Translations under genes and position numbers: made by a program | Notes under the pieces: model-generated | Database searches by the model: none | What the model was told of the DNA's origin: nothing | What the model saw: the letters and a program-made list of their open reading frames with translations, nothing else | Shown: piece by piece, positions 24,066 to 59,200 of the stretch | How positions within the stretch are numbered: the first letter of the stretch is position 1 | How the letters are laid out: every line of letters begins with the position of its first letter | DNA from: Podarcis filfolensis | Taxonomy: Eukaryota | Direction: 5' to 3' (one strand) | Length of the DNA stretch: 64,000 nt | Assembly (NCBI GenBank): GCA_964270895.1 | Contig: OZ185437.1

Positions 24066-24307
24066 CAGTGGTACCTTGGGTTACATATGCTTCAGGTTAC
24101 AGACACTTCAGGTTACAGACTCCGCTAACCCAGAAATAGTACCTCGGGTTAAGAACTTTGCTTCAGGATGAGAACAGAAATCATGCTCCAGCGCATGGCA
24201 GCAGCAAGAGACCCCATTAGCTAAAGTGGTGCTTCAGGTTAAGAACAGTTTCAGGTTAAGAATGGAACTCCGGAACGAATTAAGTACTTAACCTGAGGTA
24301 CCCACTG
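24066..24307. mobile_element. Tigger-like MITE (family A)
   Basis: TIR CAGTGGTACC with TA TSD; body nearly identical to the other copies. Confidence 0.88.
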
Positions 24308-24408
24308 TATTTGGCTTTTGAGATGAGCCGCATATTTTTAGGACCCACTTTATTTCTGTGATTTAAACTGTTTTTAATACTGTGTTTTCATGTTGTAACC
24401 CACCCTGG

Positions 24409-25964: not shown

Positions 25965-26206
25965 CAGTGGTACCTGGGGTTACAAATGCTTCAGGTTACT
26001 GACGCTTCAGGTTACAGACTCCGCTAACCCAGAAATAGTACCTCGGGTTAAGAACTTTGCTTCAGGATGAGAACAGAAATCGTGCTTTGGCGGCACAGCG
26101 GCAGCAGGAGGCCCCATTAGCTAAAGTGGTGCTTTAGGTTAAGAACAGTTTCAGGTTAAGAATGGTCCTCCGGAATGAATTAAGTTCTTAACCCGAGGTA
26201 CCACTG
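25965..26206. mobile_element. Tigger-like MITE (family A)
   Basis: TIR CAGTGGTACC with TA TSD. Confidence 0.88.
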
Positions 26207-30769: not shown

Positions 30770-31500
30770 AATAATAATAATAATTGATTATACCCTGCCC
30801 ATCTGGCTGGGTTTCCCCAGCCACTCTGGGCAGCTCCCAACAGAATATTAAAAACACGATAAAACATCAAACATTTAAAAATTCCCTAAACAGGGCAGCT
30901 TTCAGATGTCTTCTAAAAGTCAGATACAGTGGTACCTTAGGTTACATATGCTTCAGGTTACATGCGCTTCAGGTTACAGACTCCGCTAACCCAGAAATAG
31001 TGCTTCAGGTTAAGAACTTTGCTTCAGGATGAGAACAGAAATCGTGCTCTGGCAGCGCAGCGGCAGCAGGAGGCCCCATTAGCTAAAGTGGTGCTTCAGG
31101 TTAAGAACAGTTTCAGGTTAAGAACGGACCTTCGGAACAAATTAAGTACTTAACCCGAGGTACCACTGTAGTTGTTTATTTCCTTGACATCTGATGGGAG
31201 GGTGTTCCACAGGGAGGGTGCCACTACCAACAAGACCCTCTGCCTGGTTCCCTGTAACCTCACTTCTTGCAGTGAGGGAACCGCCAGAAGGCCCTCGGAG
31301 CTGGTCTTCAGTGTTGGGGCTGAACGATGGGGGTGGAGACGCTCCTTCAGGTATACTGGGCCAAGGCCATTTCCGGCTTTAAAGGTCAGCATCAACACTT
31401 TGAATTGTGCTTGGAAACCTACTGGGAGCCAATGTAGGTCTTTCAGGACTGGTTTTATATGGTCTTGGCGGCCACTCCCAGTCAGGATGCTGGAATAGAT
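30770..31500 (-). mobile_element. L2 LINE 3' fragment
   Basis: Minus-frame peptide DHIKPVLKDLHWLPVGFQAQFKVLMLTFKA...VVAPSLWNTLP and an (ATT)n tail. The 60105-60265 (+) tail is the same family. Confidence 0.9.
30927..31168. mobile_element. Tigger-like MITE (family A), inserted in an L2 3' fragment
   Basis: TIR and TA TSD; L2 sequence continues on both sides. Confidence 0.88.
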
Positions 31501-32046
31501 GGGCCCTTGGTCAGATGCAGCAGGACTCTTCTTATGTTTGGTCTGGTCCTGTGTATAAAAATATACTTCAGGCCTCAAGGCTTGGGTTAATCTTGCCAGA
31601 GCACATTCCCAAAGGACCGTTTTCCCTTTTCAGTGAGCAAAGTCAAGGCCGCACCTCCCTGCACGAAATTAAGACTGAAAAAGGAAACGGGCTCCAGGGC
31701 GGGTTTGGTGGGGGAAGCAAGTGCTGTTCCTGCATGCGTGCACGCTCCTACGTGGGCACATTGCATTATTATTGCCTGGCGGGTGTCTTTGAATGGAGAC
31801 CCCGGCTGCAAAGCTGCAGCAGCCCCAGCTTGGGATCTCGTTCTGTCAAAAGGAGCTGAAAAGGTTTTTAAATAGCTGCAGCAAGTTATACATAGTAAGA
31901 GCGAGCGAGGGGTGGAAAAACGGATGCTGTATCTTTAACCCACAACGGCTGGAGCAGATTTTGTTCTGAGCTAGTTAACAATGGAAACTTTTTTTTTTTA
32001 AGTGTTTCCCTCCATCGGTCCTGCCAAGCACCAGAGAGAGAGAAAA

Positions 32047-32466: not shown

Positions 32467-34029
32467 GTAAGGCCAACCTCTCCTATTTCGCTCTCTGCAT
32501 ACCGCCACCCCCCAGCTCGGCCGAGGGGATCGCTCCTTTCGCAGACCCTGTAGGAGCAGAAGAGATTTTTAGGCTGGGTGCGCGGGCGGGCAACGGCGCA
32601 CACATTTCACAATGGCTATTTCTCAAGAGGTTGCCGAACTGCGCTCTGCTCAACTGGCAATGGGGCTCCGAGTCCTTGCAGGTTCCTTTGGCAGAGGGAG
32701 CCTCCGACAAGCTGCCTTTTGGGGCAAGATCCGCTTGGAGTACAAAACCCCAAAAAGTTATGCGGAGACTTCCAGAGAAGCGAATTGTATCCGTTACGAT
32801 GAGAGGCGGTTCAGCCAACGGAGTTAAATCTGCGATGGGGGTGGAGGGCGTTGCGATGCTGATCTGCAGTTACTCACCTTTGTTTGTTTGTTTGGGTAGA
32901 CATCGCCAACATTTGTTTGCCCTGTGTAGCGTGACGGTAAGGCATCCATCACGGGGTTTAGACTGCGCATAAACACACATGGCCACGTCCAGCATGTTTA
33001 ATGCACATCGCCTCCTTTCCTCTCCTTCGGCATTTGGACGCACTCAGAGTTTCCATAAAGGGAGCTGTAATTTTAATGAGCCGTTCAGGTAGCACAGAGA
33101 GTTAGTACGCCACGGTTGACTCCTGCCTCCCCCCATAGATGCAACACTGGAGTAAAGTGTGCCTTGTACTTAACCGAGTCACCAGAGGTATTTGCAGTAC
33201 TGCTTGTACAAAAACAGTGTATGCAAGAATTCTGCAAAGTAAGGTATATGTAAACACACAGATGCACAGGGAGTCCCCACAGGGGTGCATTCAGGTCCAC
33301 AGCTGTGGGTTTTGTTTTGCTATACAAGCGTCGTTTTACATGGAGCTGCTCGGAAATGTGGAATTGCAAGAAAAGTGCTTAAAAGCAGAATTGCAAATAT
33401 GCATACATTATGTATAAAAGCAGAGCCACAAGGCATGCCATTTGTGGTGTTCTGAGAAGCCATAGGCGACAAGGGGAGGGGGAGAGGTAGCATATGTGCA
33501 TAGCAATGTCAAGGAAAAAAAAACAGGGAACATAAGCATAGCCTTGGTCCAGAGGGTTACACAATCCTAAGAACAAACTCATGCTAATATGTGTAGCTAT
33601 GCACAGTGGGTTTAGTAAAGCAATTAATTGCGCTCACAAAAGCCGTGCTGCTAATACTAAACGTGGCGCTCGGCTTTAGGAGTCCATATCTAGTTTAGTT
33701 GTGATATTTGGGGGACTTGAACAAGCCACTTTTAACCTTAGAAATCTTGTAGCAACAACATGGGCTTTGCCTTCCTTGCGAGGGTGGAGTTAGAATGCAA
33801 GGAATCACAAGTGGGGAGAGTGCTCTGGCAGAAAGGTCCAGCTTGTGAGATTTCCTTTGGCATCTGGCTGGCCATGATGAGAACAGAATGCTGGACTAAG
33901 TGGGCGTTTGACTGATCCATCAGGGCCCTTCTTATGTCATTATGATTTGCAGTTACGGAATGTTAAAAAATAGTGTGAATATTTAAAATTCAGCAGCCAG
34001 GTTGCTCACTGGGACAAGATGGTTTAAGC

Positions 34030-37699: not shown

Positions 37700-39700
37700 C
37701 TCTCCGCCTTACATTAAATACAGTGCATTAAACATTGCGGTAGAGGGGGTGGGTGGGAAATAATGGGTCGGTTGTTCGCCGCTGAGGGTTTTTGGTTTTT
37801 CCCCCCAGCCGGATTTGAAATAAGGTTCCGTTTGATATCTCCGCTGTCTGTGGAAAGGCACATTAAATTGAGTTCTGGTTTGCCGTGCGGGCATTTAAAC
37901 GCTCTCCATAGTTTAAGAGGAGAGTCTGAGCCGCAGCTACTCCCTCATGCCGCCTGCCCGGCCCATGATCCGCGAGCTTCGCCGCCATTGGCTGAGCCGC
38001 GCACGTCGCGGCCAATCAGCGCGCGCGGCTAAAGACGCCTCGGTTTTCCCGCGCTCACTGTCCCTCTTCTCTCTCCCTCTCTCCTCAGTTGTTTATGGAG
38101 CGGCGGGCCGGGGCCAGCACACCGCCTCTGCGCTTCTTCGGCTGCTCCCTGGGCGATGCTGCAGCCGCCACTACTACTGCCGCCGCCACCGCCGGCCCTG
38201 AGAGGACGTGGGCTGCTCGGCAGAGGCTGACCTGGGAGGAGGAGAAGGTGGCGGAGGAGGAGGAGGAAGAAGCGGACCCTTTACTATGGCCGTGTCCTGC
38301 TATACGCTCAACAGCCTAGTGGTCATGAAGAGCGGCGAGGAAGACGAGGAGAAGGGCGGCTGTGGAGGCGGCAGGAGCAAGACGCCGCCCGTCACGCGCA
38401 GGCAGGTGTTGCCTGCTCTGGTCCCGGGAACCGAGAGGCACAGCAGCTACTGCCCGCTGCCCGGGCGCTCCAGCGCTCCTGCTGCCGCCACCCCAGCTTT
38501 CCTGTTCCCGCCGGCGGAGCCGCTGCTGCTGCAGGCTGGGGGCGAGGAGGAGGCTGCGCCCCGCGGACCCCGCCGCCGGCTTAGCAGCCCCAGCTGGGCG
38601 AGCCCCCCTGGCCGCTCGCCTTCGCCCGGCTTGGAAGAGGCGCGCAGGACGGCGCGGCTCCTGCAGCGGCAGAACGTGCAAGTGACTCAGAAAGTGGGGC
38701 TCTTCGAGGCGCACATCCAGGCGCAGAGCTCCGCGGGCACCTTCCTCCTCAAGAGCCCCGGCGCGGGCAGGAGGAGGAGGTCGCCTTCGCCCAGCCCGGC
38801 TCGGGCCGCGCAAGTGCTTGGGCGCGCACCGGAGGCGGGGTCGAAGCAGCAGCAGCGGCGACAGGAGGAGGAGGAGGCGACCGTCGAGGGGCCGGAGAGC
38901 CCCCTGGCCCGGCTAGAGAACACGGCGAGGACGCCGGAGCAGGAGGCGGAGAAGAGAGACACGGGCTCTCCGGTTGCGCAAGGCGCGATGGAGACGGAGA
39001 ACGGACCCCTTCTCAGAGCCCAGCGCCCGGAGGAGGAGATGGGCGGCAGGAGAACTGGAGCGCAGGAGCCCAAAGAGTTGGAGAGCAAGTCGCCTCCGGC
39101 GCGCGTCTCCGAGGAGAGGGAGAAAGGGGACCCCTCGCCAAAGGCGCACCCTCGGGGCGCGATGGACAGGGCGAATGGGGCTTCCAGGACGCAGGAGGAG
39201 AGGAGGCCGGGGTCCGGTGGGGGGCAGGACTTGGAGAAGAGAAGCGGCTCCTCTGAATGCCAGGACTCCAGAGACGTGGTGAGCGCGAGGAGATGTCAAG
39301 GGGTGACGGGGAACGGGAGGCAACTCCTGGAAGACGATGCGCGGCGTGCCCGGGGGCCGCCCAAGGTGAGCGGGTCCCCCAAGGCGCCAGATTTCTTCGA
39401 AGGCGTGCAGGGGAGGAGCGGCTTTCGCGGAGGGCAGGGCTCCGACGCGACGGAGAAGCCCCTTGGAGAGCCGCTCCCGGCAGGAGACCCGCCTTGTGTT
39501 GCCAAGACTGACGGCGAGGAGGGTAGCAGCAGCAGCAGCAGCAGCAGCTGCTTGCTAGTTGTGGAGTGCTCGGCGAAGAAGCTGCCGTCGGCGCCCGAGC
39601 CTTCCCCAGACATTATGGCTGAAGCTAACGGAGCTGGGCTGCAAGAGCAGCAGCATCCTGGGGGGCAGCAGCCTCTGCCTGGGACCTCGGCAGCCCTAGA
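37700..39700. promoter_or_regulatory. CpG island over ITPKB exon 2 with a possible proximal promoter
   Basis: Very GC/CpG rich. ATTGG (~37987) and CCAAT (~38011) flank gcacgtcgc immediately upstream of the exon-2 acceptor. Confidence 0.7.
38089..38285 (+). other. ITPKB: 5' UTR part of ITPKB exon 2 (acceptor AG at 38087-38088)
   Basis: Branch-like CTCAC near 38054, long pyrimidine tract tccctcttctctctccctctctcctc, then AG. Confidence 0.8.
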
Positions 39701-39983
39701 GCAGCAGGAGCAGGGAAAGCCCCTGATGGAAGCTGAGAGTTGCTGCGGAGGAGGAAGCAGCATCCCTGCTGTCATAGTGACTGACCTGGGTGCTCAGGAG
39801 GAGGAAGAGGCAGGAGGAAGCCCCCGAAAGAACATGCCTGTCAGGAAGTTGTCTTCCTCCTCAGCCTCTTCCACTGGCTTTTCCTCATCCTGGGAAGAGT
39901 CTGAGGAAGACATCTCCAGCGATCCCGAGAGATCCTTGGACCAGAGCCCAGCCTTCCTGCAAACCCTGGATAAACCAAGAGTG
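38286..39983 (+). CDS. ITPKB: Inositol-trisphosphate 3-kinase B, first coding exon (N-terminal 566 aa; partial CDS, kinase-domain exons lie beyond the window)
   Basis: ATG at 38286 in strong context (actATGg). MAVSCYTLNSLVVM matches the recalled human N-terminus MAVYCYALNSLVIM. Further conserved blocks are FLFPPAE, SSPSWA, QNVQVTQKVGLFEAHIQAQSS, IPAVIVTDLG and RKLSSSSASSTGFSSSWEESEEDISSDPERSLD...AFLQTLDKPRV. A GTAAGT donor at 39984 follows KPRV; 1698 nt = 566 codons, phase 0. The track's GTG start at 38208 and its read-through into the intron are artefacts. Confidence 0.95.
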
Positions 39984-42511
39984 GTAAGTTCTGAGCAAAG
40001 CAAGTGTCAGGCAATAAGAGAGGTTTTTCAATAGCTTGCCTCTGCAGGTGATGGGTGTCTCCTCTGCCCCTTTTGGAAGGGAATCCTCTTAAAGAGGAAT
40101 AAGTTGTTCACTCACTTTTTGATCTGTTTCTGTTCTGGTGCTTATGATCGCTTTACTTTTACTTTTGCCTTCCCTTAATATTTCATGTGTTTGGCTCATT
40201 CCATCAAGTTTCATTCTGCTAAGAGTGAAATGAGATAACCCGCATCTTCACTCTAAGGAGTCACACGACTGATGTTTCCATTAGGTGTGTTCATCATTAT
40301 GTTGTGCGGGAAATCTGGAAAATGGAAACAGAGTTTGGTGGGGGAAAGGAACCAGAACAGGGTGGTAACACCTCATTTTGAGGGTAAATCCAGAGGTGCC
40401 AGAGGGCAGTGGGCAGCAGGGCTTCTTGCGGTATGACAGAGACTACCATACACTCAAAGTGGTTTGATTTAAACAAAGGTGATTTAAATTGTTTGAATTG
40501 TTAAGGAAAAAGAACAAATTAAAATGATTGATTTAAATGCAGTTTCTTATTTTGAAATTCCTGTAAATTTGCACAGGCATGCTTACTAACTGGTTACTAT
40601 AATAATTTAAATGTATTAGCTTTTAATTAAATAGAGCCTTTATGCATAGCTGAGTCAAGAGACACATTTCTCTTTGGCACTCTCTTTACACATTCAAGAA
40701 TATTAAACAACATCTCTTACTTGATGGCTAAGTAAGAGTATATTTATTTGGAAGGAAGCCCCACTGAAGAAAGTGGAACTTCTGAAAAAATATTGCACAG
40801 AATTTCACTTTGAAGTATTGAGACCATAAGGGCTATTATCTATTGAGCAAAATAGTGTTTATTAATGTGATTGAGAGAAATGTCCATGGCATTTGGTTAG
40901 TAGGCTCATAAATATTCATAACATGAGAACTGAACATATTGCAGAACTCAGGAAGTTGAAGGGTTTAATTAGGAGTACATGATCACCCATATGGGCTCTG
41001 TGGATGATCCTGGCAGTATACAAGATGGCATCTTTTGGATCCTAGTACCAGTGACGGCTTGTTAGACGCTGGGTCCAGGAGGAAATCAGCAATAATAAAT
41101 TCAATACATGCTTCCCTTGTGTCATTTATAATGCTTAGCATTATAACTGAAATAGTTTCACCCAGTGCTATTTTTTACACAAACCTTTCATTAACTCTGT
41201 TTGATAGATGGCCATAATTAGGTTTTAAGATATTTTAAGATACTTTAACATGTTTGTTTATATAGGAGAGACAACTATAATTAATTACTTCTGAAATAAA
41301 AAAAAACCCTATTGTTTGAATTTTCAAAAATAGGATTTTCATTTAAAAAGACATACACACCTTCCATTTAAATCTCCCCAGCACACACAGGACACTTACT
41401 TCAGTATGATCAAATTAGTTTCATATGAATCCCACAACAGTGACTGCAGTTGTTGACTGGAAATACAGACGGGGTGTTGGTGGGGATGCATTTTTTTGCA
41501 CCCGTCCTGATGGTTTTCAGATTCTTGTGGGCCTCTGAGTCCAAGTGTCCAGCTGCCCATAATTGAATTCCATATGGATTTCCAACCTAAGATGAGGGCA
41601 GAAAGTCATCTCACAGTGGGAAAAATAGTTCAGGGCATTTGTTAGAGCTGAGAGAGCTTCAGCTGTTAACACTTGTCCCAGATGATTAGGAAAAAATCAT
41701 TATTTGTCATCTTCTTAAAAAGCCAAACTTTCTAGCTTGCCAGACTCTTCTGTTTCATTGCTAAGACCCCTTCAGCTGTTATTAATCAGGAATGCTTCAT
41801 GCTTTTATTCTCAAGTAAAAGACAAAGCAAGTACCATGCTCCCTCTGTCTGACTTAGCTGTTTGCACAGAAGTCATAGCCACTCATAACCTGAAAATTGT
41901 TTGACTATAAGAGAAGTTCCATACAGACTTCAAGAAGTATCTGAAAGGGAGAAAATAATGTTTTTGACACATTTACCTAACCGAACTAATGTCTTCATCT
42001 TCAAATGTGTTCAAGGGCAACATCCACAAGCTTAGCAAATATATGGTAGTCTGTTGATTTTAAGGATTCTATTACAATATTTTAGCAAACCTATCATTTA
42101 ACTATATTAAATCATACTCGTGTCCGTCTTTATAGACATGCATAAGATGAGCAGATTGTTCATAAATCATTATTATTATTGTTATTGTTATTATTTAAAC
42201 TTAGTAGTTGCTTGTCACCCAAACAGTCTGCAAATGAATTACATTTTTAAAAATACATAAATATCACAGAAAAGGTGGAGGAATCATATAACACATTCAT
42301 ATTCCATACAACATTTTGGAAAAAGGAAAAAACTAAAACACCCACTTCCCATAACAGTGATGGAAAACATTGGCAACACCTTAACAATAAACCAAAAAAT
42401 ACTCCAATCCACCAGCATAAAAAAATTAAAGCTCAACATGGACACCTCCCTCCCTAGTCCAAAAATCATTCATGTCAACATTGTGATTTTTATATCTACC
42501 CACTGTACCCA

Positions 42512-44418: not shown

Positions 44419-46472
44419 ATTAGTCTAGTACCTTGACTATTTTGTCCTTAGAGAGTGGGACCCCCCCCTTATGGTGCATGGAATGGGCAGAGAGATTGTT
44501 CGTAAGGAGACACTGGGAAGGGGCAAGTTAACACTAGGAAGTAAGCTGGTTTGCAGGTTTCCTTCGTTCAAGAACAAGGTTTCACTAGATTAACCCACCT
44601 CATCTAGCATCCTCTTCAGCTTCCTGATTAGTCAAAAGAGCAGCAGGACTCATTCATGAAATAAAGAATTCATGGATATCTTGACCTTGTTCCTGCCCAT
44701 TGAAAATGTATAAGGGAGTGAGTATCTGAATACAGGTAACTTGCAACTTAAGCACGTTTAACATGTGTTATTTCAATTGTACATGGTTCACGGCTAGCCA
44801 GTTGAAATCACAGAAATTAAATGTATGGAAGGTGAAGAGCTTAAAACTTCTCTTTGTTCAGGGTTTTCCTGGCCTGGAAAGAGTTTTTAATAATCTCTCT
44901 ACCTTGCTTGGGCTGCTGCTGGTAAGACCCATTCAACGTGCCAGCTCTGAAAGGTAGGACTGCTCATGTGGAGACAATTTTGTGTCCTCCAGGGGGTGGT
45001 TTGAGTATACACATTTTTGCGTATATGCAGCACCCTGAGAGCATAACCCCCACATATGGGGCAAGTTACCTGTATGTGCAAATGCAATCCTGCGGGTCTC
45101 TCCTGTGACAGTCTGAATGCAAGTGTGGGCACATATTTATTGGCATATGCATGTACACACACACACACACTTTATGAGCTCTCTTAATGTTAGATTTTGT
45201 TGAAGTGAGTACAACAGGAGAGAAATCATAAAATCTGACTGCAAGCCAAACTGACAATATATGACAAAATGCATCTTGAGCATACAGCTCTGTATACAAT
45301 TGACAGCAAACAATGTTTCAGTAGTTCAAACCTGGCAGCCCAAATGCAGCCTATTAATTCCATGTAATCCTGCTACCTTGAATGACCAAACTGACCCCAA
45401 CCTTACAATATGTTCTGCCCCCTCCAGGGACCTTGTGCATTCCCAATAGTTCTGAAGTTGCAAACATGTCTTATTTGCGTTTGTGTTATTTCCAAAGGGA
45501 ACATACATATATTTAATACAGCACTTCTGTCCTGAAAGGGCCTTTATGTAACTTGAAACCTTACCATCACGGTCTGCTTGTAATCTAGTTAAGTATCTGT
45601 TTCAGCTAACTTCATGTATCTTGATCCTGAAAGGTTGAAGACATGGCAGCATGAACAACATTCGCAAAGCAGCAACCTATTTTTTATCAGTTTCTGGCTT
45701 GTGGCTTGGAAGTTTGTTGCCAGCCTTTTAACAACTCTTTTGTCAAAATGTGTTTATATTTTATTTTATTCTGTGAGATCTTTTAGTCTACTAAAACTTT
45801 GGAAATCACACTGTTCTCCATTCTAACCCTGGAGGAAAATTTGTTTGTTATTCTACTTTGGGGTAGGCTACTACCTACACAGGAGAGGTGGTGATATGCA
45901 TTAGGAAAATACCTTTCTGGGATGTACACTTAAGTGCTCAGTCAACAGAAGGCTTGCTCTGACCTTTTTCTGAGGCCGTATACTGCCTGATTAAGGAACC
46001 TTTCAGGAACATCCGGTTGTCTATACTAACTCCTGGATGTTCTCTCTGGGGAAGACCTTGTGTTGACATTTCAACACAGTATCACCTAAAGCTATTTTGT
46101 TTTCCACAGCACCAAGTGTCTTAGCTAGGCAAGTATCTCGGATAAAAGGCGATGTATAGTTGATCTCCCTGCCCCCAACTTTAGCTTGATATCCTCAAGC
46201 CCTGAAGAAGATGCCATTTTTGCTGCTGTACTGTGAGAGACAATACATGATTAAATCAGTCTAGTATTTCGTAGCCACCTCTGAAGTTGTTCAGCCCAAC
46301 CATACTCATATAAAAACTGGTATGCAGCTGCTACGTTACTCCTGCATAACAATCCTGTAGCATTGACTGTAGTTATTGTCATTTTGTTGAAATGGAGAAG
46401 GAACACAGAAGGCTGTCTTATGCTGAATCAGTCCATTGGCCCTTCAAGTTTAGCATTGTCTACACTGGCTGG

Positions 46473-46805
46473 TTAAACCACAGAGCCTAGGACTTGCCGA
46501 TCAGAAGGTCGGCGGTTTGAATCCCTGCGACGGGTTGAGCTCCTGTTGCTCGGTCCCTGCTCCTGCCAACCTAGCAGTTCGAAAGCATGTCAAAGTGCAA
46601 GTAGATAAATAGGTACCGCTCCGGTGGGAAGTTAAACGGCGTTTCCGTGCGCTGCTCTGGTTCGCCAGAAGCGGCTTAGTCCTGCTGGCCACATGACCCA
46701 GAAGCTGTACGCCGGCTCCCTCGGCCAATAAAGCGAGATGAGCGCCGCAACCCAAGAGTTGGTCACAACTGGACCTAATGGTCAGGGGTCCCTTTACCTT
46801 TACTT
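46473..46805 (+). mobile_element. Sauria SINE, 5'-truncated, inserted in an older tRNA-derived SINE
   Basis: TSD tacactggctgg at 46461-46472 and 46806-46817. The flanks (~46400-46460 and ~46806-46920) are two halves of another SINE family. Confidence 0.92.
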
Positions 46806-48336
46806 TACACTGGCTGGCAGTGGCTTTCCACAGGGTTTCAGACGGGGGATATTCCTGGCCCCTCCTTGGAGATGCCAGGGATTTAACCTGGGGCTATTTG
46901 CATGAAAGGGAAACCTGTTGAGCTCAAATGTTTGTGTTGCACACCACTTTGCTTCAATAGGGAAGCAGTCTAGAGATCTAAAAGTGGGTGGAAGGATACA
47001 CAAACGGCAATCCGGCATTGTGGAAAGTCACAGCGTCATCTTGTTGTGGAAACTTGAAATATGCTCCAAAGCACATAAGCATAGGAAAGGGCATGTTGTA
47101 ACAGTTATTCCAAAGGAAGAGGAGGCGAATCAGAGTGATGAGCTTGACATCTTTGACAGGCTTGGCTGCTTATACCGTCTGGCCAGAGTGTGGGGCTTTA
47201 CTAAATCTGTGTTTTGCATGCTGGAGAGGAATATATTCAGCTCCGAAAGGATGGAGGACAGAGTGATCCATGAATGTAATACATCAGTGGTGTTGCTTAG
47301 TGCAATTGTCTGGAGGAAGCCCTTGAGGCTGACTACATGGTGTACCTGTCATGCATGAGTCATCATAAATGTGTTCTAATATTATAATGTTGTATGCCCA
47401 GGCATGGAGAACCCTTTTAGAGCCAAAGGCCCCATTACTCCTCTGGAACACTGTCAGGGTTACATTCCAGAACCACAAAGAATCAACAGAGAGAGACAGA
47501 ATCACACATGTTAACCCTTTACTCCACCCAGCCTTTCCATCCTGCTCAGCTGTCTCTTGATTAGACACTTCCAAATCCCTTGAACTATCAATTGTACCAC
47601 ATTAGTTGCCAACACTGGAAGTTAATTCCTATTATATGGTGCTTTATGAATATCTGTTCCATCTTTTCTAGGTATTGTAGGAAAGCTCACTTCTATTTCA
47701 TTGCTATAAGACCAGATCGGATTGTTATTGTTGCTTTAGCTTTTTGCATTTCTGCTGCTTTTTGCCTTGTAGCATTGAATCCAGTTCTCATCCCCTTACT
47801 GATTAGATGTTTTATGTTGTATAGAGGCTGCAACGTTATAGGCTGTGACACAGCAAGCCTTATATGGAGTAGGGCTCGGACAACAATGCAGATTTATGGT
47901 GATGAAGGTAATAGGTTTCTTATTTAGTTAGCATGTATTTTTTTACCTTGCTCATCAGCTGAAAAGCTTGCAGATCAATAAAAAGAAAACAAGATCATCC
48001 CTGGCCTTGGAGTTACGATTTAAAAGGCATGACACAAAAAGAACAAGGGGTTCAGAGGGAGGAAAAAGCAAACTGAGTCACTAGTTCTGAAGTTCTAAGG
48101 ATGACTAATTTAGATGGAAACAGTTCAGGTAGTCTGATGGAACAACTATTGCTAGGTGATAGATGAGGGAGAAAAAGGACCAAAGGCAGCTGGTGACTCA
48201 GCAGAGCCGATGAAATAGCTCTGCTTCTCACCCCTCCCTCTTCTGCAGCCTGATGGAATGGCTGTTAGGGAGCAGGCATTACATATGCAAGGTACTAAGT
48301 TCTATTTGGTGTATTGTAAGCATTCCTGTGCACTAG

Positions 48337-49055
48337 AAGTTGGGGTTCACCCTATAAAGTCGATTGCCTGTAGGTTCAGGGCAGAGAAGTACTTTTTCTA
48401 CATAGCACATGGTTAGACAAATGATGGAACTCCCTGGCACAAGATATGTTGATGAAGTGCAGCTTAGAGCAAGCAGTAGGCAAGGAGAATAGGCCTATCT
48501 ATCCATCCATAAAGGTAAAGGTAAAGGTACCCCTGCCCGTACGGGCCAGTTGTGTCCGACTCTAGGGTTGTGCGCTCATCTCACTTAAGAGGCCGGGAGC
48601 CAGCGCTGTCCGGAGACAACTTCCGGGTCACATGGCCAGTGTGACGAAGCTGCTCTGGTGAGCCAGCACCAGCGCAGCACACGGAAACGCCGTTTACCTT
48701 CCCGCTATAAAGCGGTACCTATTTATCTACTTGCACTTAGGGGTGCTTTCGAACTGCTAGGTGGGCAGGAGCTGGGACCGAAAGACGGGAGCTCACCCCG
48801 CCGCAGGGATTCGAACCGCCGACCATACGATTGGCAAGTCCTAGGCACTGAGGTTTTACCCACAGCGCCACCCGTGTCCCAAGTTGGGGTTCACCCTATA
48901 AAGTTGATTGCCTGTAGGTTCAGGACAGAGAAGTACTTTTTCTACATAGCACATGGTTAGACAAATGATGGAAATCCCTGGCACAAGATATGTTGATGTA
49001 GTGTAGCTTAGAGCAAGCAGTAGGCAAGGAGAATAGGCCTATCTATCCATCCATA
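48337..49055 (+). repeat. 175-bp direct repeat (48337-48511 and 48881-49055)
   Basis: Constant offset of 544, no indels, 5 substitutions. Confidence 0.95.
48512..48880 (-). mobile_element. Sauria SINE (divergent subfamily) flanked by 175-bp direct repeats
   Basis: Reverse-complement head ...agcgccacccgtgtccc and tail aaggtaaaggtaaagg. Flanks 48337-48511 and 48881-49055 are 170/175 identical by manual comparison. Confidence 0.92.
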
Positions 49056-49310
49056 GCTGTTGCCTATTACAGCTAAGGGCGAAGTCTCTCATGTTCAGAG
49101 GTCGTGCATATCTGAGCACAGGGTGTCAAGGACAAGCAGAGAATGACCATCCCTTTAATGCCCTGCTTACAACCCTGCAGAAGTATCTTCCTAGGCTATG
49201 TTGGAGACAGAATGCTGGACTATATGAGCCCTTGGTCTTACCCAGCAAGGCAGTTCTTGTGTTCCCATCCCACGCAAAATGGAATTTGCAGAATGTAGTG
49301 TCCCTCTGAG

Positions 49311-49752
49311 AATATCAGCTTTCATTTTTTGCGGGGGGGGGGGGGAAGAGAGCAAAATCTTCACTTCACACAGCTGCAGCATTTGATAAGGTATGGACAC
49401 TGTCTGCTGAAGGCTTATGGCATGTCTAAAGCTATTAATATAGCCGAAAACAGTGCACAAGGAATTCTTACAAAACAGTGAAAGAGGTAGTGTGCTTCAG
49501 GGAAAGTTTTCCGTTGAATGAGAACAATTATAGATATCATGGCCCTTCTATGAAAAACTTTCCCTGAGGCACACTGCCTCTTTCACTGTTTTTGCAAGCA
49601 TTCCTTGTGCACTGTTTTCGGCTACATTAGTAGCTTTAGACATGCCATAAGCCTTCAGCAGACAGTGCCCATACCTTATCAAATGCTACAGCTGTGTGAA
49701 GTGAAAAATTTGCTCTCTTTTTTTTTCCCTTCCAAAAATGAAAACTTATTTA
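49311..49752. repeat. Long inverted repeat (core arms 49346-49511 and 49552-49719)
   Basis: Manual reverse-complement comparison: about 11 substitutions and 1 indel in ~166 bp; 40-bp spacer. Confidence 0.92.
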
Positions 49753-51825
49753 TTTTTGAAGACCAGGACTTTTTTTTCCGGCCGGCACTGGCTGGAACTC
49801 AGTTCCAGAACCTCTCAGGTGGGCACAATTGCCATTCTTAAGAGAACGAGGGAGGCGTTCATGGTGAGTTCCTGCACCTCTTTTTTCCGGAAAAATAGCA
49901 CTGATGATGATGATAATTTATATCCTACCTTTCCCTTCCCCCTAACAATATAACATTCTAATGGTAACTTTGTAAAATCAATTTGAAAAATGCAACGAAA
50001 CAGCAACGACAAGATTATCAAAACAAAAATGGACAGGGCATCATATTATAAATTAAGACACTGGAGTTGGCATAATACCATGAAGCTAATTAAAGGGGCC
50101 ATCTTAAGATTTAGTTATTTTTACAGATCAACTGTCGAATAATGAGGAACATTTCAGTTTGGATTAAAATTCTCACACCTGGAACTTTTACTCGCCAAGA
50201 CTTCAGCTTATAGTTGTTCTCTGGAGTCTATGCATGTCAACCAGACATATCCTCAAGTCATTAATAAGCTGCATTCTAAATAGCATATGATACAAAATGC
50301 CCTTTATTTTTTCCCTGTGGTGCTACTTGGTTTCATTGGTGTTGGCATGGCGATATTATCATTTCACCCATATACAGGTCCTATCCTTCTTAGAGGATTG
50401 GAACTCATTTGGCACATAGAAGTAGTTTAAAGCAGACATTGGAATAAAAATCTATGCTTCAAGATTTCGTATCGTGAACTTCCTTCAGCTTTCATGCGAG
50501 AGCAATAAATACAAATTCTGTATTTGGCAAAGAGTTTCGAATGTTTAGGTTGCTTGGTTTTTTTGAAGAGCAGAATACCACTGGCATTTGCTAATTTTTT
50601 TGCAATTTGTTTGCCTGACACTTTCCAGCCAGAGGAAAGTGCCACCAAAATCATTTGGAGTTGCTCCTGCCCTGAAACAGGTCAGTTCTTGATGGTTGTG
50701 CAATACTTTATTGTGGCCCAAAATGTAAGATAATTGCTACAACACTTTAATCCTCCATTGTCACTCATTGCTAGCAGATTCCTGCTATGAAAGCTTTATT
50801 GGGGCTCCGTATCTGTGGCTTCCAGAGCATCCCAGCAGCTGGGGAATGTGGAACTATTTGCTAGGCATTCAAAACATTCCATGAAAGTGAAGGCCTTCTT
50901 GCTGGAAGTCTCATGTGATATGCAAGCTGCTGTTAAGATTTACTGTTCCAGCATCTCCTTTGCTAAGTGCAGATAACTGTGAAAGGGTTTTAGCACTCAT
51001 GTGCAACAATCAATAATGGCAACCTGAACAGGGACCGCAAGTCTGCACGCACCACCTGCAGTGTCTCTGGGAGAGCTGACCATTCCCCACTTCACTCCTG
51101 ATCTTCCTGGGCTGAGTAGCAAAGGCTTAAGGGGGATTCAAAGTGTATTTAGCTAAACACATTTAGAAGGCTCCTCATGTTCAAGACCCCTGATAACTCT
51201 GTGAGGGATCCTGCATGGAGCACACAGGAATATTGGGGTGGGGCTTGGATGCTCAGCCCCCAAACTCTTCTTCAAGTTGCCATTTGGTTTCAGACTTCTG
51301 TGTCTCCACATACAATGCAAGGGATCCTAAGATCGCTGTCTGCTTTTAAGTGCAAGCCTCTATTAACATTAGCAAAACAGCATGACTGTTTGGGAAGCCA
51401 GTGTATAAGAGTGTGTAATGTTTGCTAGCTATTGAAAGCGAAAGCTTATTCATTCCTTTGACTGGCAGTGACTGTGAAATAAAGTTGAAGTGAGCTTTGT
51501 TTATATATGACACGTTGTAGCCAAGTGCAAGTCAGACCCTTTGCTTCTGTTTTTCCTGTTCTACGCAGCCAAAAAACCAACCACACTTCTGATTAATTTG
51601 CCATAATTTTTAAAAAATCATTTTTTCTCTGGGTGCAATTGTATTTGGGTAATGAGAAGTGAGAGAAACTCAGTTTGTGGGAGATATGCCTTGTGAAAGA
51701 GTAATGCTAGAACTGAGATTATCCCAGACACTCTTGGGTGACTGGGACTGTGTGTTCTTGGTCCGGTTCAGCAGGAGCTTTCAGGATCAGGAAACAGAGC
51801 TAGTGATTGTGGCACAGATGGGGTA

Positions 51826-52174
51826 AAGGTATAGGGACCCCTGACCATTAGGTCCAGTCGTGACCGACTCTGGGGTTGCGACGCTCATCTCACTTTATTG
51901 GCCGAGGGAGCCGGCGTACAGCTTCCGGGTCATGTGGCCAGCATGACAAAGCAGCTTCTGGCGAACCAGAGCAGCGCACGGAAACGCCGTTTACCTTCCC
52001 ACCGCAGCAGTACTTATTTATCTACTTGCACTGGTGTGCTTTCGAACTGCTAGGTTGGCAGGAGCAGGGAATGAGCAAAGGAACTCACCCCGTTGCGGGG
52101 ATTCGAACCACTGACTTTCTAATCGGCAAGTCCTAGGCTCTGTGGTTTAACCCACAGCGCCACCCATGTCCCTT
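51826..52174 (-). mobile_element. Sauria SINE
   Basis: TSD cacagatggggta at 51813-51825 and 52175-52187. Confidence 0.92.
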
Positions 52175-55100
52175 CACAGATGGGGTAGTTTCACATTATT
52201 TACCATAGGTTGGGTGCAGACCAGGTTTCTTGAAATTAATGAATCCTAAATGTTTTATTTAGGGTATCTTAAACAATATGGAGCTTAGTATATGTTGCCT
52301 TCTGAGCCTAGGGAAGCTGAGCTTGGCTTCAAGATAAGGGTTTGCAAGCCTTTTTCATTCAAGTTTGGGGAATGGTGGGGCAGGCTGTCATAGCAGTCTA
52401 GATCATATGGGGGGAGATACCAGAATAAAAACAGGAGAAAAAATGGATATGCCCACCAGAATTGGGTTAGAGGACATATCCAGAATATCTCCTTGAAGAC
52501 TTTGGAGGGAAGGTTCAGAAAAGGGATTGGCAGGAGGCTGGGTAGAAGCAAGAGTAAAACATGGATTGTATCTGCATGTCTGTATATGCTTGTGCGTTTA
52601 CTGGTGCAGTTTTCCAGCCTGAGCATTCAAATCAATGCACACAGAAATATTTTAAAATAACATAAAATTCCATTATAATAGCAGACTGCTAGAACCACTT
52701 AACAGCAAATTAAAACGACGGTTGTCAGCCAAAAAAAAAAAAAAAAAAGTTTCAGAAATTCCCAAAGAGTAAATCAACACTTACCATTAAAGGTTTTAGA
52801 GAATAAAAGTGCACTGAGCTGCTGATGAAAGCTGTGCGAAAGGAATTCTAGTTGCAAAGGTTCCAGAGGGAGAGAACCACAGCCAAAAAAGCTGTTCATG
52901 AGTCAGGTGCTGCCCGTTTAACTCTGAAATCATAAGAAAATGCTGAGGATAAGCAACCAACAGCATCTTTTTCTCTTGGCTGTTCGGTTTGAAGACAGCC
53001 AATGCTAGACAGGAGTTTGCCAACCTTTTTAAGCCTGTGTAGGGCATTTGGATTATTGTGTGAGCATCTCCTCTGGCCACTTATTTTTAACATATCTTTA
53101 TATAGTGCCATCAGTGTACATTGCTCTGTACACAATTCAGATAAGGAATTCTACCCCAAAGAGCGTACAGTCTAAAACAATGGAAATGGTTTAACTTCCC
53201 TGGATCAAACGCCCTATCCCTGAATGACACACACTCAGAGAGTGGATGCAAACAGTTTGCTTTTCCAAGAGATCTGCTTCCAGTAGAAAGAGAGAGTTAT
53301 TCAGTATACCGCTCCCCTTCCCAACAAAATAAGGGCTGCAACTGTCCCTCCTCAAAAGCTCTGCTGTGTCAAGGCAAGACTTTTGTGGTCTGCAAAAAAA
53401 GTGACAGCAGATTGATTGGGGCAGGCAGACTGCTGTCCAGCTCAGTAAAAGTAGCCGGAGGAACAGAGTCCACATTTTCTTCCCATCGAAAAGTCTTGAA
53501 CCCGCTCACCTTAATGGCCTGGCAGAATTTTAGGACCTGATAGATGACAGCCGAGGCAGCTAACAAAGAAAGGGCAGAAAGGAGATTGAAAACCCAATAG
53601 TGAGCTACAGTCACAGAGGCATATGAGAGAAGGCATCATAAGGATGTCAGCCAATGGGGGCCATTTTTCAATTTCCACTGTTGCTAGGCTAACTTTAAAG
53701 TATATGCAGTGTTCCTTATCCAGTACTCTCCAGATGTTTTGGATTCCCAGCTCCCATCAGCTCCAGCCAGCAGGGCCAGTGAGCAAGGATAGTGAAAGGT
53801 GCAGTTCAAAACCTCTGGAGGGCACCAAATTGGGGAAGTTTTGGCTGCTGCCTGCCTCTGCTTCCTGCCTCTCTACTCCAGATAAAAATAGCAATGTTTG
53901 GAAATAAGGTTGTGGTGATATATCTCAGAAGGAGCCCCGTGCAACTTTGAGGATGGGGGCCTTGCTCTGATTTGTAACCTCTGTATTTTTTTAAATGGTC
54001 ATCAATGTGTATCTCGGGGGAAATGGAGTTGGAGGAAGCTCTGACTGACTGAGAGAAGACTTCCTAAGTTTGCATTTTGAAAACACATCTAGGGTGGTGG
54101 CTCAGTATAAAGGGTGGAACTCATTTGGGTCAGGATGTTGATCTTTGGCAGCCAGTGTTTCCATTCATAATGTGCATTGTTGTTATGCCCCTGAAAAAGA
54201 GTTATCTCTTTCTAAATTACCGTTTTAATCCCCCCCAACATCTTAAAGTAAGTAACACAAGTTGCTAGGAATTCAGTAAAGGAATCACCATAAAGAAAAC
54301 ATTTCTTTAAAATAGAGACCAGCTGTTATTAGTTGGCAACCTAGAAACTTCAGAGAATTAAAATACACAGTAGCTGAAATTACAATCTCAATCTTTCTTT
54401 TGTACACTAGAATAAGTGAAGACATAAAACACCACTGAGCACTGGTACCATAATTTCCATGCCTGCCAGTTTGCTATCTTGTTTTAGAACAGGTTTATAT
54501 TCTAAATGTTTAGTGAAAACATTAGCTCAGTACTAATGTTTAGTCATTGTGTGGCAGTGAAGTCACACTCTTGATTATCTTGGCACCTGGATGTGCTATA
54601 AAATGCCACAGTGGCCTAACTCAGTCTTGCATAATTCTCAAAGTTCATGTTTATGTTCTGGTGGCTGAATACATCAAGTTATTCTCACTAGTTTTAGATG
54701 GATGGAGCCCAAACAAGATTCCACACACACGTGTTAGAATTCAGCAGTCACTGTGGGGAAATTTACTGTTTTCTAGAAATTACTTTGTAAGCCTTTGCCC
54801 TCCTGTAGGAGAGCCAACATGTTGAGGGTGAGATGTTAAAAGGAAGGCCCAAACATTACCAAAACCACATCATGAAAAATATAGTTAACTATGACTTCGC
54901 AACAGGCCCAAGACATTTTTGCTGCCTGAGGTAAATGTTAAGATGCCCCTCCCCTCCCATTCAATGTAGAATAGAGACTGGCAACTGAGTCTTACTTCAA
55001 CACTAGTGAGGGAATGGTGGCTTCTGCTGCACCTGAGGGCTGTAGTGGACAGACCATATGGCTGGAAATCTGTTGACCAGCCTCTTACTTTTGCTCCCTG

Positions 55101-56075
55101 CCACCTCAGCATCTGCTGCCTTAGTCGGCCACCTCACTCTGCCTAACAGTAGGGCCAGCTCTGCTTGATTGCCATGAACACAAGTGCAGTAGCACCCTGC
55201 TTGCCATCCGCCATCTTATTAAAGCCAATTACTACAGCATATATCAGGTGCAGTAATGAATGTGTAGGCCACTGGCTGTGATTGCTTCATGTTGGCAGAA
55301 ATGCCCATAAACGTCAGCCATAAAGCTGAGCCTTCAGAGTGGATGCAAGCTAACAGGGCCTTGTGGGAGCAGTGCATAAAACGGTTCACGGCTAATGTGA
55401 AAATCTGGCTGTGTAGAGGTTTCTACATTTCTTCAAAGAATACTAGGAAAAATCCAAAACAATTACAGATGTGTGCATTTTAGTGGGATTGGCACAGGGT
55501 CCTTTGGGACAGTGCCCATAACAAGTGGTGTGTTTATGCTTCCTTGCCACCGCAATAGTTTTTGTAACTTAAAAAAGGCACATAACATGTAGATGAATAC
55601 ATATGTCCACATATGTAGCCAGCTGTGTTAAGAACAACCCACCCTCCTAGCATGTGCGATGAGACCTCTCCGTCTCAACGAGATCCTACCCAGGAAGAAA
55701 TTTCTATCAGTGCAGCAGACTTGCCTTGAACACCCTTCCTTTTTTAAAGCTCTTTGAATTTGTTGCACTCTAGAAACAGGAATCAGCCTTATACCGATCA
55801 TGAGATTGGTCTCCCTTCTCAGTGTTGTGGCTCTCCCTCCAGTGTTTCATACAGGCGCCTTCCCTGATTCTGCCTGGAGATGCAGAGAATTTAATAGGAA
55901 GTGCATGCTCCACCACTCAGAATGTGAACAAGTCCTCTAACTTAAAAAAGAAGAGGCTACCTCCATCATGCCTGCAGAGAAGCTGCTTTCCCATTTATTA
56001 TGGTCTATAATGCTTCTGATGATAACAAGGAGAATAAAACACTGTTGGTTAGTTGGAAAGGCAACAACAAATAGC

Positions 56076-56233
56076 CAGTGGCGTAGCATGGGGGGTGCAG
56101 GGGGGGGCCGGCCGCACCGGGCGCAACATCTGGGGTTAGGGCAAATCCACGGGTTAGGGGGCGCAAATCCACGGGTTAGGGGGCCAAATTACTTGCCTTG
56201 CCCCGGGTGCTGACAACCCACGCTACGCCACTG
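56076..56233. mobile_element. hAT-like MITE with internal TTAGGG-containing repeats
   Basis: Perfect 12-bp TIR CAGTGGCGTAGC; perfect TSD caaatagc at 56068-56075 and 56234-56241. Confidence 0.9.
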
Positions 56234-59200
56234 CAAATAGCCCTCTGATCAACATTTGCCAAATAGGAACTAAAGTAAAGTTTGGTCATGTTGTGATATT
56301 TACTAAGTGTTGTGCTTGGAGTCAAATCCTTACATTTTAAATGGGTTAATTTCAGTGGCAGCTGGTTCCTATAAAAGCTAATGGGGTAAAGAAAGAGACC
56401 CTGTTCTGTGCTCAGTAACTCCTTGCCTAGACAAGGGATGTGTGCAAATGAGTTCATAACTGCTCATTATGGAATCAGTGCAGTTCACTCAGGCAGGGTT
56501 TGTTTGTTGTTGGGTTTCTTTGCAGTGCCCATCAATATGCCGCCATCCCCATTTGGCTTGGATTTACCTTTTCCATTTAACATTTGATAAGTTAAAAAGA
56601 CCCCTGTCCAGAACCACCAAGCCTGTTCTTTGCAAAGCTATGCACAATTGCCACGCCATCTCTAAACAAAATGGTTGGTCGTGGTTGCCAAAAACGTCTT
56701 GAAAATATAGTGTGCCCCAATATAACTATTGCTTGAACGTGGCCAATATAGCAGCCATCCCCACAATCACAAGGGAAGACTCCTCCTATAGCAACACATT
56801 GCTCTGCTGACACGGTGCTGAGTCTTCCAGTCAGTTTGATAAGTGCCAGCAGCCTTGAGGAAAGGGACACATTCCTTCTGCAGTTCTCTGTTTACCCTCT
56901 TGCAAGCGCTCTGTGATGCTGTCGGGCAGTTTCTTTCTCCTTCAGTTCTCCTTGTCCCCCCATTCACAGCTGGTGACTTTTGCCATATCAAGAAATTGCC
57001 CTGTGAACTGGGTGTCTTGTTTTCTGGAAACGGAACACCACTGAGATAACGTAAGAAGCAATTTTACTGCATGGTTGTATTGCTCCAAAATGGTTATGTA
57101 CATCATAAGAAAATGTCTTCCTGTTCTAGCAAGTGCAGCTTGTTTGACAAGTTGCAAATGGAAATCCATGATCTATCATTGTGATTCAGACACGCTCCTA
57201 CCACCTATGCAAATATATAACTACCACTTACTAATAGTAACAGCTGGTTAAGTTTCAGTTGTACTTTTTATAGTTTATCATTGCCAGAAACTTTTTTTTG
57301 GTAAGAGGGGCAATGAATAAACTTATTATGCTGCTTTCTTCCTCCATGAAGCCGTAATAGCCAATTTATACAATAGTTTCTATAGGGCACATTGGCAGAA
57401 GTGCTTGACCCTATGGAACTGGGAAGGCAAATCTCAGAGGAGGAAAGAAAGAAGGGAAGCTATGCTTTCCTGGAGATCCAGAAACTAAAAAGCTAAGTCT
57501 GCAATCCTTTTGGTATGCTTTGTGCTGCGGGATTTTCTTAAGTTACAGTGTGGTGTTATTGTACCCGTAGGCTACTCATATTAAATGTTTTTCCAATTTT
57601 AGCAGCATTCTTTCCAGGCTCAACTACATTTGTTTTTATCTTCTCTATGGCAATTGATGACCTCAGTCTGAAAATGCCTAATTCCGTAGGATTTCTTGTT
57701 ATGTATTTCTTCCACATCTGGAGCTGAATCAGGGCTGCTTAATCCAATGACATGTTGTAGCATTTTATGCTTTCTGTAATAAATCTCAGATTCAAAGAGT
57801 CAGCAGCGTTTACAGTTTGCAAGTAATAATTTTAAACAGTCTTTAATGATAATACAGAAAGGAGCTTGAATAACGATTCTCCTTCCCGTCCCATCAGAGC
57901 CTACCAGTAGGAAACCAAACAGGGAGAGATAAATGATAAGATAAACAATCTGATCCTTTAATAATTTCACATGGAAAATCAAACAGCAATTTGGCATGGA
58001 AATGGAACAAGAAACAATAACCATGACTTTAGAAGGGATTACAAGAGAAGTCTGCAAATAATAAGATATATAAATGAAGAGGAGTCTCGTGTTGCTTCAA
58101 CACCAGCACCTTTTACTGCTGAAGCGTTGCTTTTCCTCAGTTGGAAGCAGAATATCTATATATATCTATAGGAGAGAAAATTAGTAAAACTAATTTTAGT
58201 AATTAATTAGCAAAGCTAACATGAAGGCTGTAATTTTAAACCTACTTTCTTGGGAGTGAGCCAGATTTAATTTAGTAGGACTTACCTCTGAGAGGACACA
58301 CTTAGGGTTGCTTTGTAAGAGGAACTGTGCAAGGGGCAATTAGCAGGCTATTCAACAGTAATCCTACTCCTGACCTTAACAGGAAGCAATAAAAGGACAG
58401 AAATTGCAAGAAGGAAGCTTTAACTTAAATATACAGGAGCCCTTTGCCTTGTTACTCTGTGTAGGTTTGTGCTCCCATTTTTAAAATGTCAAAAGAAGGT
58501 CTGGAAAATACATGAGGAAAACTCACAAAACCCTGGCTTGCAGTGGGCAATAATAAAACCATATTAAATAACTTGAAGTTAGTCCTGTTGGATTCTATGA
58601 GTTTTATTCCCAGCTAAGTGGTGTTATAATTGCAGCCCAAGCTGCTTCTGAAAGCATTTTTTTTTTTACAGAAATGTATGCAGAACCATATGAAATGTTG
58701 TCTCAGTCTGTAACTGTATGTACAGGTGTGTATGAGAAAGCCCCAGTTTAGACTGTGGGACTTACTCTGGAGTGAATATCCATGGGTTTGGGCTTCTTTT
58801 GATTTATTTCAGCCCAAGTGGTCCTTTTTTGCCATTCCAAAGGCCTGTGCACTCAACATCAACTGCGTATAATGATTTCAAAGCAACTTTAAAAGATTCT
58901 AAAATGAAACAACTTTTTTAAAAGCCAAATGAAAAAGTACAGTAGTTTAAACAACTCCAGTGCTTTCACGCTTTGTCCAGAATGTTGCAGCTAGTATTAG
59001 ATTTGGTGATCTGATGCCACACCATTACACGTCAGATTTTGTAAGCATGTCACACGTTTGCCTGTGTGCACACTGAAATCTTATCATGTGTGTGCCAGTG
59101 CAAAAGGGGAAAAGTTTGGCATTCTTCTTAAGCTTTCATGTCAACACCCCAATATAGGAACCAAAGTGAATCCTTTTGTCAACATCTGAAAAGGATGTTC

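Follow-up and report, generated by a model that had tools for sequence, protein, structure and literature searches.

Within the 64,000-nucleotide stretch of Podarcis filfolensis DNA analysed here (the window), a full-length Sauria-type SINE of 369 bp fills the interval between two copies of a 175-bp direct repeat. Both the SINE and the duplication are real, they occur together with base-exact borders, and the ancestral site carried a single copy of the repeated segment and no SINE. We consider it likely that one target-primed insertion produced this arrangement, with the second-strand break falling 175 bp from a canonical-looking first nick. What is observed of the SINE and the duplication is their co-occurrence and similar age, from which we infer that both would have arisen in the same event.

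The locus had been described in a first-pass annotation of the window as a 369-bp SINE exactly abutted by a 175-bp direct repeat with five substitutions, and sequence comparison confirmed this description. The two repeat copies (48337-48511 and 48881-49055, hereafter DR1 and DR2) are identical at 170 of 175 bases (97.1%) and differ at repeat offsets 25 (C/T), 45 (G/A), 94 (C/A), 119 (A/T) and 124 (C/T). The head of the SINE, GGGACACGGG..., ends at 48880 (sense start GGGACACGGGTGGCGCTGTGG), and both SINE ends adjoin the repeat with zero spare bases. The features of the locus, including the two predicted break positions and the target-site duplication (TSD), are as follows:

49055..49056, plus strand: putative first (priming) nick in the pre-insertion site, ...CCATCCATA^GCTGTT; the empty sites are uninterrupted here and the TSD starts with TA
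48336..48337, minus strand: putative second-strand break, 175 bp from the first nick, placed from the left repeat boundary
48337..48511, no strand: DR1, left copy of the duplicated target; adjoins the SINE tail and is continuous with the left flank in empty-site species
48881..49055, no strand: DR2, right copy of the duplicated target; adjoins the SINE head and is continuous with the right flank in empty-site species
48512..48880, minus strand: Sauria-type SINE with the GGGAC head common to the other full-length copies; ends ACCTTTACCTTTACCTT
48860..48870, minus strand: A-box-like motif TGGCGCTGTGG of the tRNA-like head, from a motif search; sense positions 11-21
48807..48817, minus strand: B box GGTTCGAATCC, an exact match to the pol III consensus GGTTCGANNCC; sense positions 64-74
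48512..48528, minus strand: (ACCTTT)n tail, the reverse-transcription priming site of the SINE, of a published tail type (PMC6007223, PMC13295347)

ARAGORN and Rfam (E<=1) called no tRNA or other RNA family in 48200-49200, and a scan for bacterial promoters and terminators, irrelevant to this genome, returned nothing. The claim that the repeat copies show no indels held for the window assembly, in which they align gap-free, but not for another individual of the same species or for P. lilfordi, both of which have an extra CTAT in the right copy. At window position 49038, the right copy is one CTAT unit short of the contigs of X1 (same species), X2 and X4 and of the P. lilfordi assembly; this difference is either a microsatellite polymorphism or a small assembly collapse.

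The placement of the borders was assessed against the eight other copies of the SINE family in the window, which are 75-79% identical to the focal copy. Full-length copies begin with GGGAC, their tails stop at varying points of one hexamer repeat, and copies with readable ends have TSDs of 9-13 bp starting with TA. The tail of the focal SINE is complete and of the same length as in one sister copy. These heads and tails indicate that the borders of the SINE, and hence those of the repeat, are correctly placed. The focal copy has 26 CpG dinucleotides (observed/expected 0.82), the most among the family copies in the window, and contigs at least 90% like it reached a very high summed depth in four of four lizard runs, which assigns it to a young, abundant subfamily. 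In line with this family assignment, 3' repeats of the (ACCTTT)n type are listed for Sauria SINEs (PMC6007223 Table 2; PMC13295347), whose TSDs start with T, usually followed by A, and for whose insertions a T-stretch ~10 nt upstream has also been reported, together forming a "Tn-TA" signature (PMC13295347, PMC6007223). The link between Sauria SINEs and Bov-B LINEs is taken from the literature (PMC13295347); neither the window nor the five orthologous loci yielded a Bov-B copy whose 3' end matches the SINE tail. As a separate observation, many contigs in X1, X2 and X4 join a SINE head to a SINE tail (48880 to 48512/48516) with 1-20 letters between them, often 10-13, which suggests that head-to-tail SINE pairs separated by about a TSD length exist elsewhere in these genomes.

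No other copy of the 175-bp segment was found within the window, which excludes chance as the source of the matching flanks, and no second long SINE-flanking repeat was found there either. For the duplicated DNA, which the first-pass annotation took for a possible old CR1 3' remnant, the window holds no related sequence; weak relatives exist for the right flank alone (49187-49318), at 33864-33993 and 31479-31538. Several further repeats were recorded. A 257-nt direct repeat at 25952-26208 and 30914-31170, 91% identical and 4.7 kb apart, has a weaker third copy at 24053-24309, and the pair could be retroelement LTRs. A very high-copy repeat that is not a Sauria SINE occupies 49691-49924 (summed contig depth in the tens of thousands) and is related to 9762-9822 and 18679-18739. 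In the Z. vivipara sequence, a 214-nt repeat (L005 45965-46178 / 51347-51560) shows 100% identity.

With regard to the gene setting, a GC-rich open reading frame of 608 codons at 38208-40034 (plus strand) is 90% identical to Zootoca vivipara inositol-trisphosphate 3-kinase B (ITPKB) and, searched as a single large ITPKB exon, matched ITPKB across squamates; Pfam and PDB gave no matches to this frame. The focal SINE is situated ~8.3 kb downstream of the exon, inside the ITPKB gene range of all lacertid orthologs, and therefore lies in an ITPKB intron, as had been proposed from the sequence alone.

The pre-insertion state was reconstructed by comparing the window, by BLAST and MAFFT alignment, with the whole ITPKB loci of five lacertid species belonging to the protein cluster of the best ITPKB hit: P. 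muralis (L001), P. raffonei (L002), P. lilfordi (L003), L. agilis (L004) and Z. vivipara (L005). All five are from species other than that of the window, with identities of at most ~98-99%. A single copy of the segment without the SINE was present in P. raffonei (L002 11150-11323), P. muralis (L001 10642-10824), L. agilis (L004 ~11431-11618) and Z. vivipara (L005 15077-15266). In these four species, the left edge runs uninterrupted from ...GCACTAG into AAGTTGGGG and the right edge from ...CCATCCATA into GCTGTTGCC.... One 175-bp copy and no SINE is the state that the first-pass annotation had predicted for related lacertids, and its occurrence in four species, continuous with both flanks, supports the interpretation of the repeat as a TSD.

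The site is filled in P. lilfordi, where DR1 (L003 10848-11022), the SINE (11023-11377) and DR2 (11378-11551) follow one another with both junctions as in the window. Identity between the window and P. lilfordi is 98.9% for DR1-DR1 and 98.3% for DR2-DR2, compared to 96.6-97.1% crosswise, i.e., the repeat copies pair by orthology across species and not within a genome. Further, a 16-bp deletion is present in both copies of both filled species and in P. raffonei, though not in P. muralis, L. agilis or Z. vivipara, and the duplication is accordingly younger than that deletion. Two structural peculiarities of these orthologs were also observed. The P. lilfordi SINE has a rearranged head (L003 11328-11377), in which ~20 nt of the 5' end are repeated and replace sense positions ~30-62, making the SINE 14 bp shorter. 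The P. raffonei sequence contains a species-specific 146-bp insertion (L002 10888-11033) with a 12-bp TSD, 105 bp to the left of the repeat (window 48221-48232).

The same comparison bears on whether an older 175-bp tandem duplication could have existed first, with the SINE landing later in its exact junction. Four species are single-copy at the site, and an outgroup carrying the tandem duplication but not the SINE, which the first-pass annotation had named as evidence against its own reading, was found in none of the sampled species; this makes a tandem duplication preceding the SINE very unlikely. Such an allele is absent from all six taxa. The SINE would, in addition, have had to strike one particular junction base without generating a TSD of its own, whereas the surveyed loci have TSDs of ~5-16 bp; a nested short TSD is absent at the focal SINE, since the end of DR1 and the start of DR2 do not match. 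We therefore rejected this order of events as extremely improbable.

Repeat copies that are 97% alike and enclose a high-copy SINE are a typical trouble spot for assembly, and the right copy in the window lacks a CTAT unit that is present in another individual's contigs; both points would fit a false join or an uncollapsed overlap. This possibility was weighed using short-read contigs from other individuals. Twenty public runs contain part of the stretch, and the contigs of four of them (X1, X2, X13 and, from organism D, X4) were placed on 47000-50500, of which X1, X2 and X13 were informative on the state of the site. In X1, which is from the species of the window but from a different individual and study, one contig comes in from the left flank and stops at 48411, and another begins 25 nt into the SINE head and stops at 48955. 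Both stops correspond to repeat offset 75, the last 31-mer with the copy-specific offset-45 base, and the two contigs, at depths of 12 and 11.2, give way to a shared contig at a depth of 23. Merging of this kind in a k=31 graph indicates two repeat copies per haplotype. In X2 (organism B, another species), a contig leads from the SINE head into DR2 at full depth. The bridging contigs cover only 22-25 nt on the SINE side, below the 31-nt rule, as expected from the k-1 limit at a high-copy repeat. The 569-nt contig of X13 (organism F) runs through 48221-48498 and then directly into 49039-49307, which corresponds to an empty site. Contigs of X13 also break at 48221-48232, the site of the private 146-bp insert of P. 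raffonei, which identifies organism F as P. raffonei or close kin and adds no extra taxon.

Against an artefact, then, P. lilfordi, assembled independently, has the same structure, two other runs yield full-depth contigs specific to one repeat copy, and three DR1/DR2 substitutions are common to different species. The recurrence of the DR1-SINE-DR2 structure in P. lilfordi and in other samples makes a false join of two haplotypes, the concern raised in the first-pass annotation, very unlikely, and on the strength of the P. lilfordi assembly and the independent contigs an assembly artefact was rejected, its probability being negligible.

In order to place the 175-bp TSD within the range usual for this family, six orthologous lacertid sequences (459 kb) were surveyed. 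Pairwise alignments were chained, insertions with an empty site elsewhere were listed, and those matching the SINE family were grouped into 16 independent loci, the six sequences holding 33 SINE copies in all; the size of the overlap was taken as the TSD, which is a crude measure. TSD-sized overlaps were ~5-16 bp, mostly 9-16, with two loci excepted. One is the focal locus, at 174-190 by the crude measure and exactly 175. The other measures 88-89 bp in P. raffonei, compared to 12-13 bp in three further species. The earlier statement that the focal TSD is over ten times longer than usual was thus borne out. A candidate 61-bp repeat pair in P. muralis (L001 46252-46673) was rejected as a TSD, being a tandem satellite. 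A 2026 survey of Bov-B/Sauria SINE insertion signatures, P. muralis included, searched for TSDs of 10-49 nt only (PMC13295347), a range from which such long-TSD cases would have escaped. The one or two exceptions among our 16 loci hint that long TSDs in the Bov-B/Sauria SINE system are perhaps not extremely rare.

The insertion that we favour would have proceeded as follows. A Sauria-type SINE, using the Bov-B (RTE-clade) LINE machinery in trans, would have entered the ITPKB intron in the ancestor of the window's species and P. lilfordi. The plus strand would first have been nicked at ...CCATCCATA^G, and the nicked 3' end would then have base-paired with the U-rich terminus of the SINE RNA tail and served as primer for the cDNA. 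The opposite strand would have broken 175 bp away and not at the usual 10-16 bp, and filling-in of the two 175-nt single-stranded stretches would have left one target copy on each side of the SINE. The distant break may have been made by the element's endonuclease, or a pre-existing nick or DNA end (e.g., a replication or repair intermediate) may have been used, as has been proposed for L1.

As the SINE lies on the minus strand, its cDNA corresponds to the plus-strand sequence, and the plus-strand 3' end ...CCATCCATA would act as its primer. Read in SINE orientation, the focal TSD starts with TATGG. A TA start is found in the sister copies and in the published signature and fits pairing with the U-rich tail, so the first nick looks canonical; the upstream T-stretch of the published "Tn-TA" signature is weak at the focal site. 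The TA at the junction would also serve as microhomology in a repair-based origin. The unusual feature is the far border, between TT and CTAG on the minus strand, 175 bp away. A hairpin or cruciform uniting the two break sites was considered and rejected, since the 195-nt target folds no better than shuffled sequences (z = -0.3). The one feature noted was a 7-bp inverted repeat, TAGCTGT...ACAGCTA (49056-49075, minus strand), forming a hairpin at the first-nick site, its 3' arm including the TA with which the TSD starts. The similarity of 175 bp to the length of a nucleosome repeat or of an Okazaki fragment is no more than a speculation.

A repair-based origin would take the form of secondary lengthening: the SINE would have inserted with an ordinary short TSD, e.g., of 18-20 bp beside its head, and the repeat would have grown later. 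Repair of a break or stalled fork at the tail junction would have copied ~155 bp, with the other TSD copy or an empty allele as template, before the strand rejoined the tail through TA microhomology. A typical short TSD would begin 9-17 nt upstream of the head, an interval that contains no TA; TA dinucleotides are found 18 and 20 nt upstream. An original TSD of 18-20 bp is possible on these grounds, and, with no other TA 9-20 nt upstream of the head, a secondary origin needs a TSD of either 18 or 20 bp.

Lengthening of this kind finds a parallel in the second exceptional locus of the survey, a neighbouring SINE at 51822-52172 (minus strand). It has a 13-bp TSD, CACAGATGGGGTA, in the window, P. 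lilfordi and P. muralis, and its site is empty in L. agilis and Z. vivipara. The P. raffonei ortholog, known from one assembly, is flanked by an 89-nt repeat (L002 14083-14171 / 14506-14594, 96% identical), and its SINE has the same head junction as the window ortholog and four diagnostic substitutions in common with it. Flanking repeats of 13 vs. 89 bp at one orthologous SINE imply that the flanking repeats of these SINEs can change after insertion. Both junction variants end in GGTA, so that either state could be derived from the other by microhomology-guided deletion or template switch. At two sites, the left copy of P. raffonei keeps the outgroup base and the right copies of all four Podarcis are derived, and the duplication at this locus is therefore old. 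The 89-nt state is either an original ~92-bp TSD, shortened afterwards in the other lineage, or an early case of secondary lengthening.

Secondary lengthening at the focal locus is thus favoured by the length dimorphism and GGTA microhomology of the neighbouring SINE and by the two TA dinucleotides near the head. It would also accommodate the three substitutions and the 4-bp indel by which DR1 and DR2 differ in both the window and P. lilfordi, more than a short common stem predicts, the flank containing only one common-stem site. However, both filled species have 175 bp and none a short TSD at the focal locus, and a primary TSD of 18-20 bp would exceed the mostly 9-16 bp of the other surveyed loci. 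The change at the neighbouring locus can, moreover, be read in either direction, because the outgroup bases in the left copy of P. raffonei also fit a long TSD that was later cut down. On balance, we regard secondary lengthening as unlikely at the focal site.

For the age of a single target-primed insertion, the preferred reading, the five DR1/DR2 differences were polarised by outgroups:

offset 25: C>T (CpG) in DR2, both filled species; P. raffonei single copy C
offset 45: A>G in DR1, window only; P. raffonei single copy G
offset 94: C>A in DR2, window only; P. raffonei single copy C
offset 119: T>A in DR1, both filled species; P. raffonei single copy A
offset 124: T>C in DR1, both filled species; P. 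raffonei single copy T

DR1 is also minus one CTAT unit, and offset 94 is C in the contigs of three runs. The pairwise distance between DR1 and DR2 is 2.9%, similar to the flank distances among the four Podarcis (2.2-3.5%), which dates the event to the early radiation of these lineages. This date is consistent with the patchy distribution of the focal insertion. The use of the 5/175 divergence as an internal clock, suggested in the first reading, is roughly workable, with a wide 95% CI (0.9-6.7%) and signs of copy exchange with other haplotypes setting its limits.

The flanks tell different stories on either side of the repeat. In 12 kb of flanks within 45000-57300, the window has 28 derived sites in common with P. 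raffonei and 4 with P. lilfordi (28 vs. 4 vs. 2), and a SINE at 46473-46805 is present in the window and P. raffonei only, whereas the focal SINE, 2 kb away, is present in the window and P. lilfordi only. Over ~2.2 kb to the right (49056-51300), P. raffonei has zero derived sites in common with the window, and at five sites it falls outside a group of the window, P. lilfordi and P. muralis. These conflicting flank sites and SINE markers indicate that the genealogy switches inside the repeat/SINE region, a sequence pattern that points to lineage sorting or introgression, with a recombination point probably inside the repeat or the SINE.

The single copy of P. raffonei (L002 11150-11323) is a mosaic, with G45 and A119 as in DR1, and with T124 and the longer CTAT run as in DR2 and the outgroups. 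A simple tree does not explain this pattern. G45 is accounted for by incomplete lineage sorting, or by introgression, together with a crossover in DR1, and A119 is left over as a single site. The repeat copies may have exchanged sequence with other haplotypes, or may have differed at birth. P. raffonei as a revertant, through recombination between DR1 and DR2, would explain the mosaic, and it was considered also because the flanks group the window with P. raffonei; this was rejected as unlikely because the sites of the right flank contradict it. A better fit is given by incomplete lineage sorting, with recombination at a point within the repeat.

Copies that differed from birth would also follow from another scheme, in which two SINEs inserted in the same orientation at either border of the segment, in different haplotypes, and unequal crossing-over between the SINEs then joined them. 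Geometrically, this scheme yields base-exact borders, and it fits the bases common to P. raffonei and DR1. However, two insertions would have had to land 175 bp apart and a rare recombination to follow, all in a short interval. SINE density here is about one per 7 kb, and neither parental allele is seen in the four empty-site or the two filled species. We accordingly consider this scheme very improbable.

If a single insertion with a distant second-strand break is the correct reading, the position of that break in the RTE/Bov-B system would not be fixed, and SINE insertions could duplicate 100-200 bp of host DNA, which elsewhere could be an exon or a regulatory element. TSD surveys capped at 30-49 nt will miss or misclassify such events. 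The paired repeat copies provide an internal age estimate and a substrate for later recombination, and recombination between copies matters for the use of SINEs as phylogenetic markers in the rapidly radiating, introgressing Podarcis. A broader proposal, which we find distinctly doubtful, would be that Bov-B-driven integration of SINEs in wall lizards repeatedly produces long TSDs, which have been overlooked and are later trimmed or recombined away. Were it true, many "normal" TSDs would be trimmed long ones and insertions could be lost precisely, leaving a site that looks empty; SINE presence or absence would then not be a homoplasy-free marker, and the mosaic single copy of P. raffonei would be such a revertant.

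Compared to ordinary squamate Sauria SINE/Bov-B insertions, the focal insertion is alike in element type, in its (ACCTTT)n tail and in a TSD starting with T (TA), and unlike in the length of that TSD, 175 bp vs. ~5-16 bp at the surveyed loci. The other RTE-clade elements considered have TSDs of 10-20 bp. Nematode RTE-1 (Youngman et al. 1996; Malik and Eickbush 1998), from the same LINE clade (RTE) as Bov-B, is reported to make unusually long TSDs.

A close mechanistic analogy would be with L1, for which "extremely long TSDs" have been described (PMC2912911). According to PMC5223499, L1 TSDs of >100 bp made up <10% of HeLa events and most events from NER-deficient cells, and large L1 TSDs in cultured cells had been found before (Gilbert 2002/2005 and Symer 2002, summarised in PMC5223499). 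They are ascribed to the use of a nick some distance away, to a DNA end from replication or repair, or to a flap that persists (PMC5223499; PMC2912911). By analogy, the focal event would share with L1 an endonuclease-initiated target-primed reverse transcription (TPRT), a normal first nick, a far second-strand break and a long duplicated target. The L1 events come from HeLa or repair-deficient cells, have mostly 5'-truncated inserts and are suspected of being cell-line peculiarities. This contrasts with the focal insert, which is a full-length SINE with an RTE-clade driver, fixed in the wild germ line and with an orthologous empty site.

Long flanking duplications are likewise known from other non-LTR elements, with a 126-bp TSD in the R9 LINEs of bdelloid rotifers and a median TSD of ~900 bp in the Dualen LINEs of Chlamydomonas (both as cited in PMC9977147), where they are also ascribed to widely spaced nicks. 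R9 and Dualen make long TSDs as a rule, in connection with their own endonucleases or target sites; here, a long TSD is the exception, at one of 16 loci, perhaps two, in a family with a norm of ~13 bp. TSDs of >100 bp arising from TPRT are therefore already known for L1 in cell culture, R9 and Dualen, and the novelty lies in a natural case for the Bov-B/Sauria SINE pair, from the germ line and verified phylogenetically.
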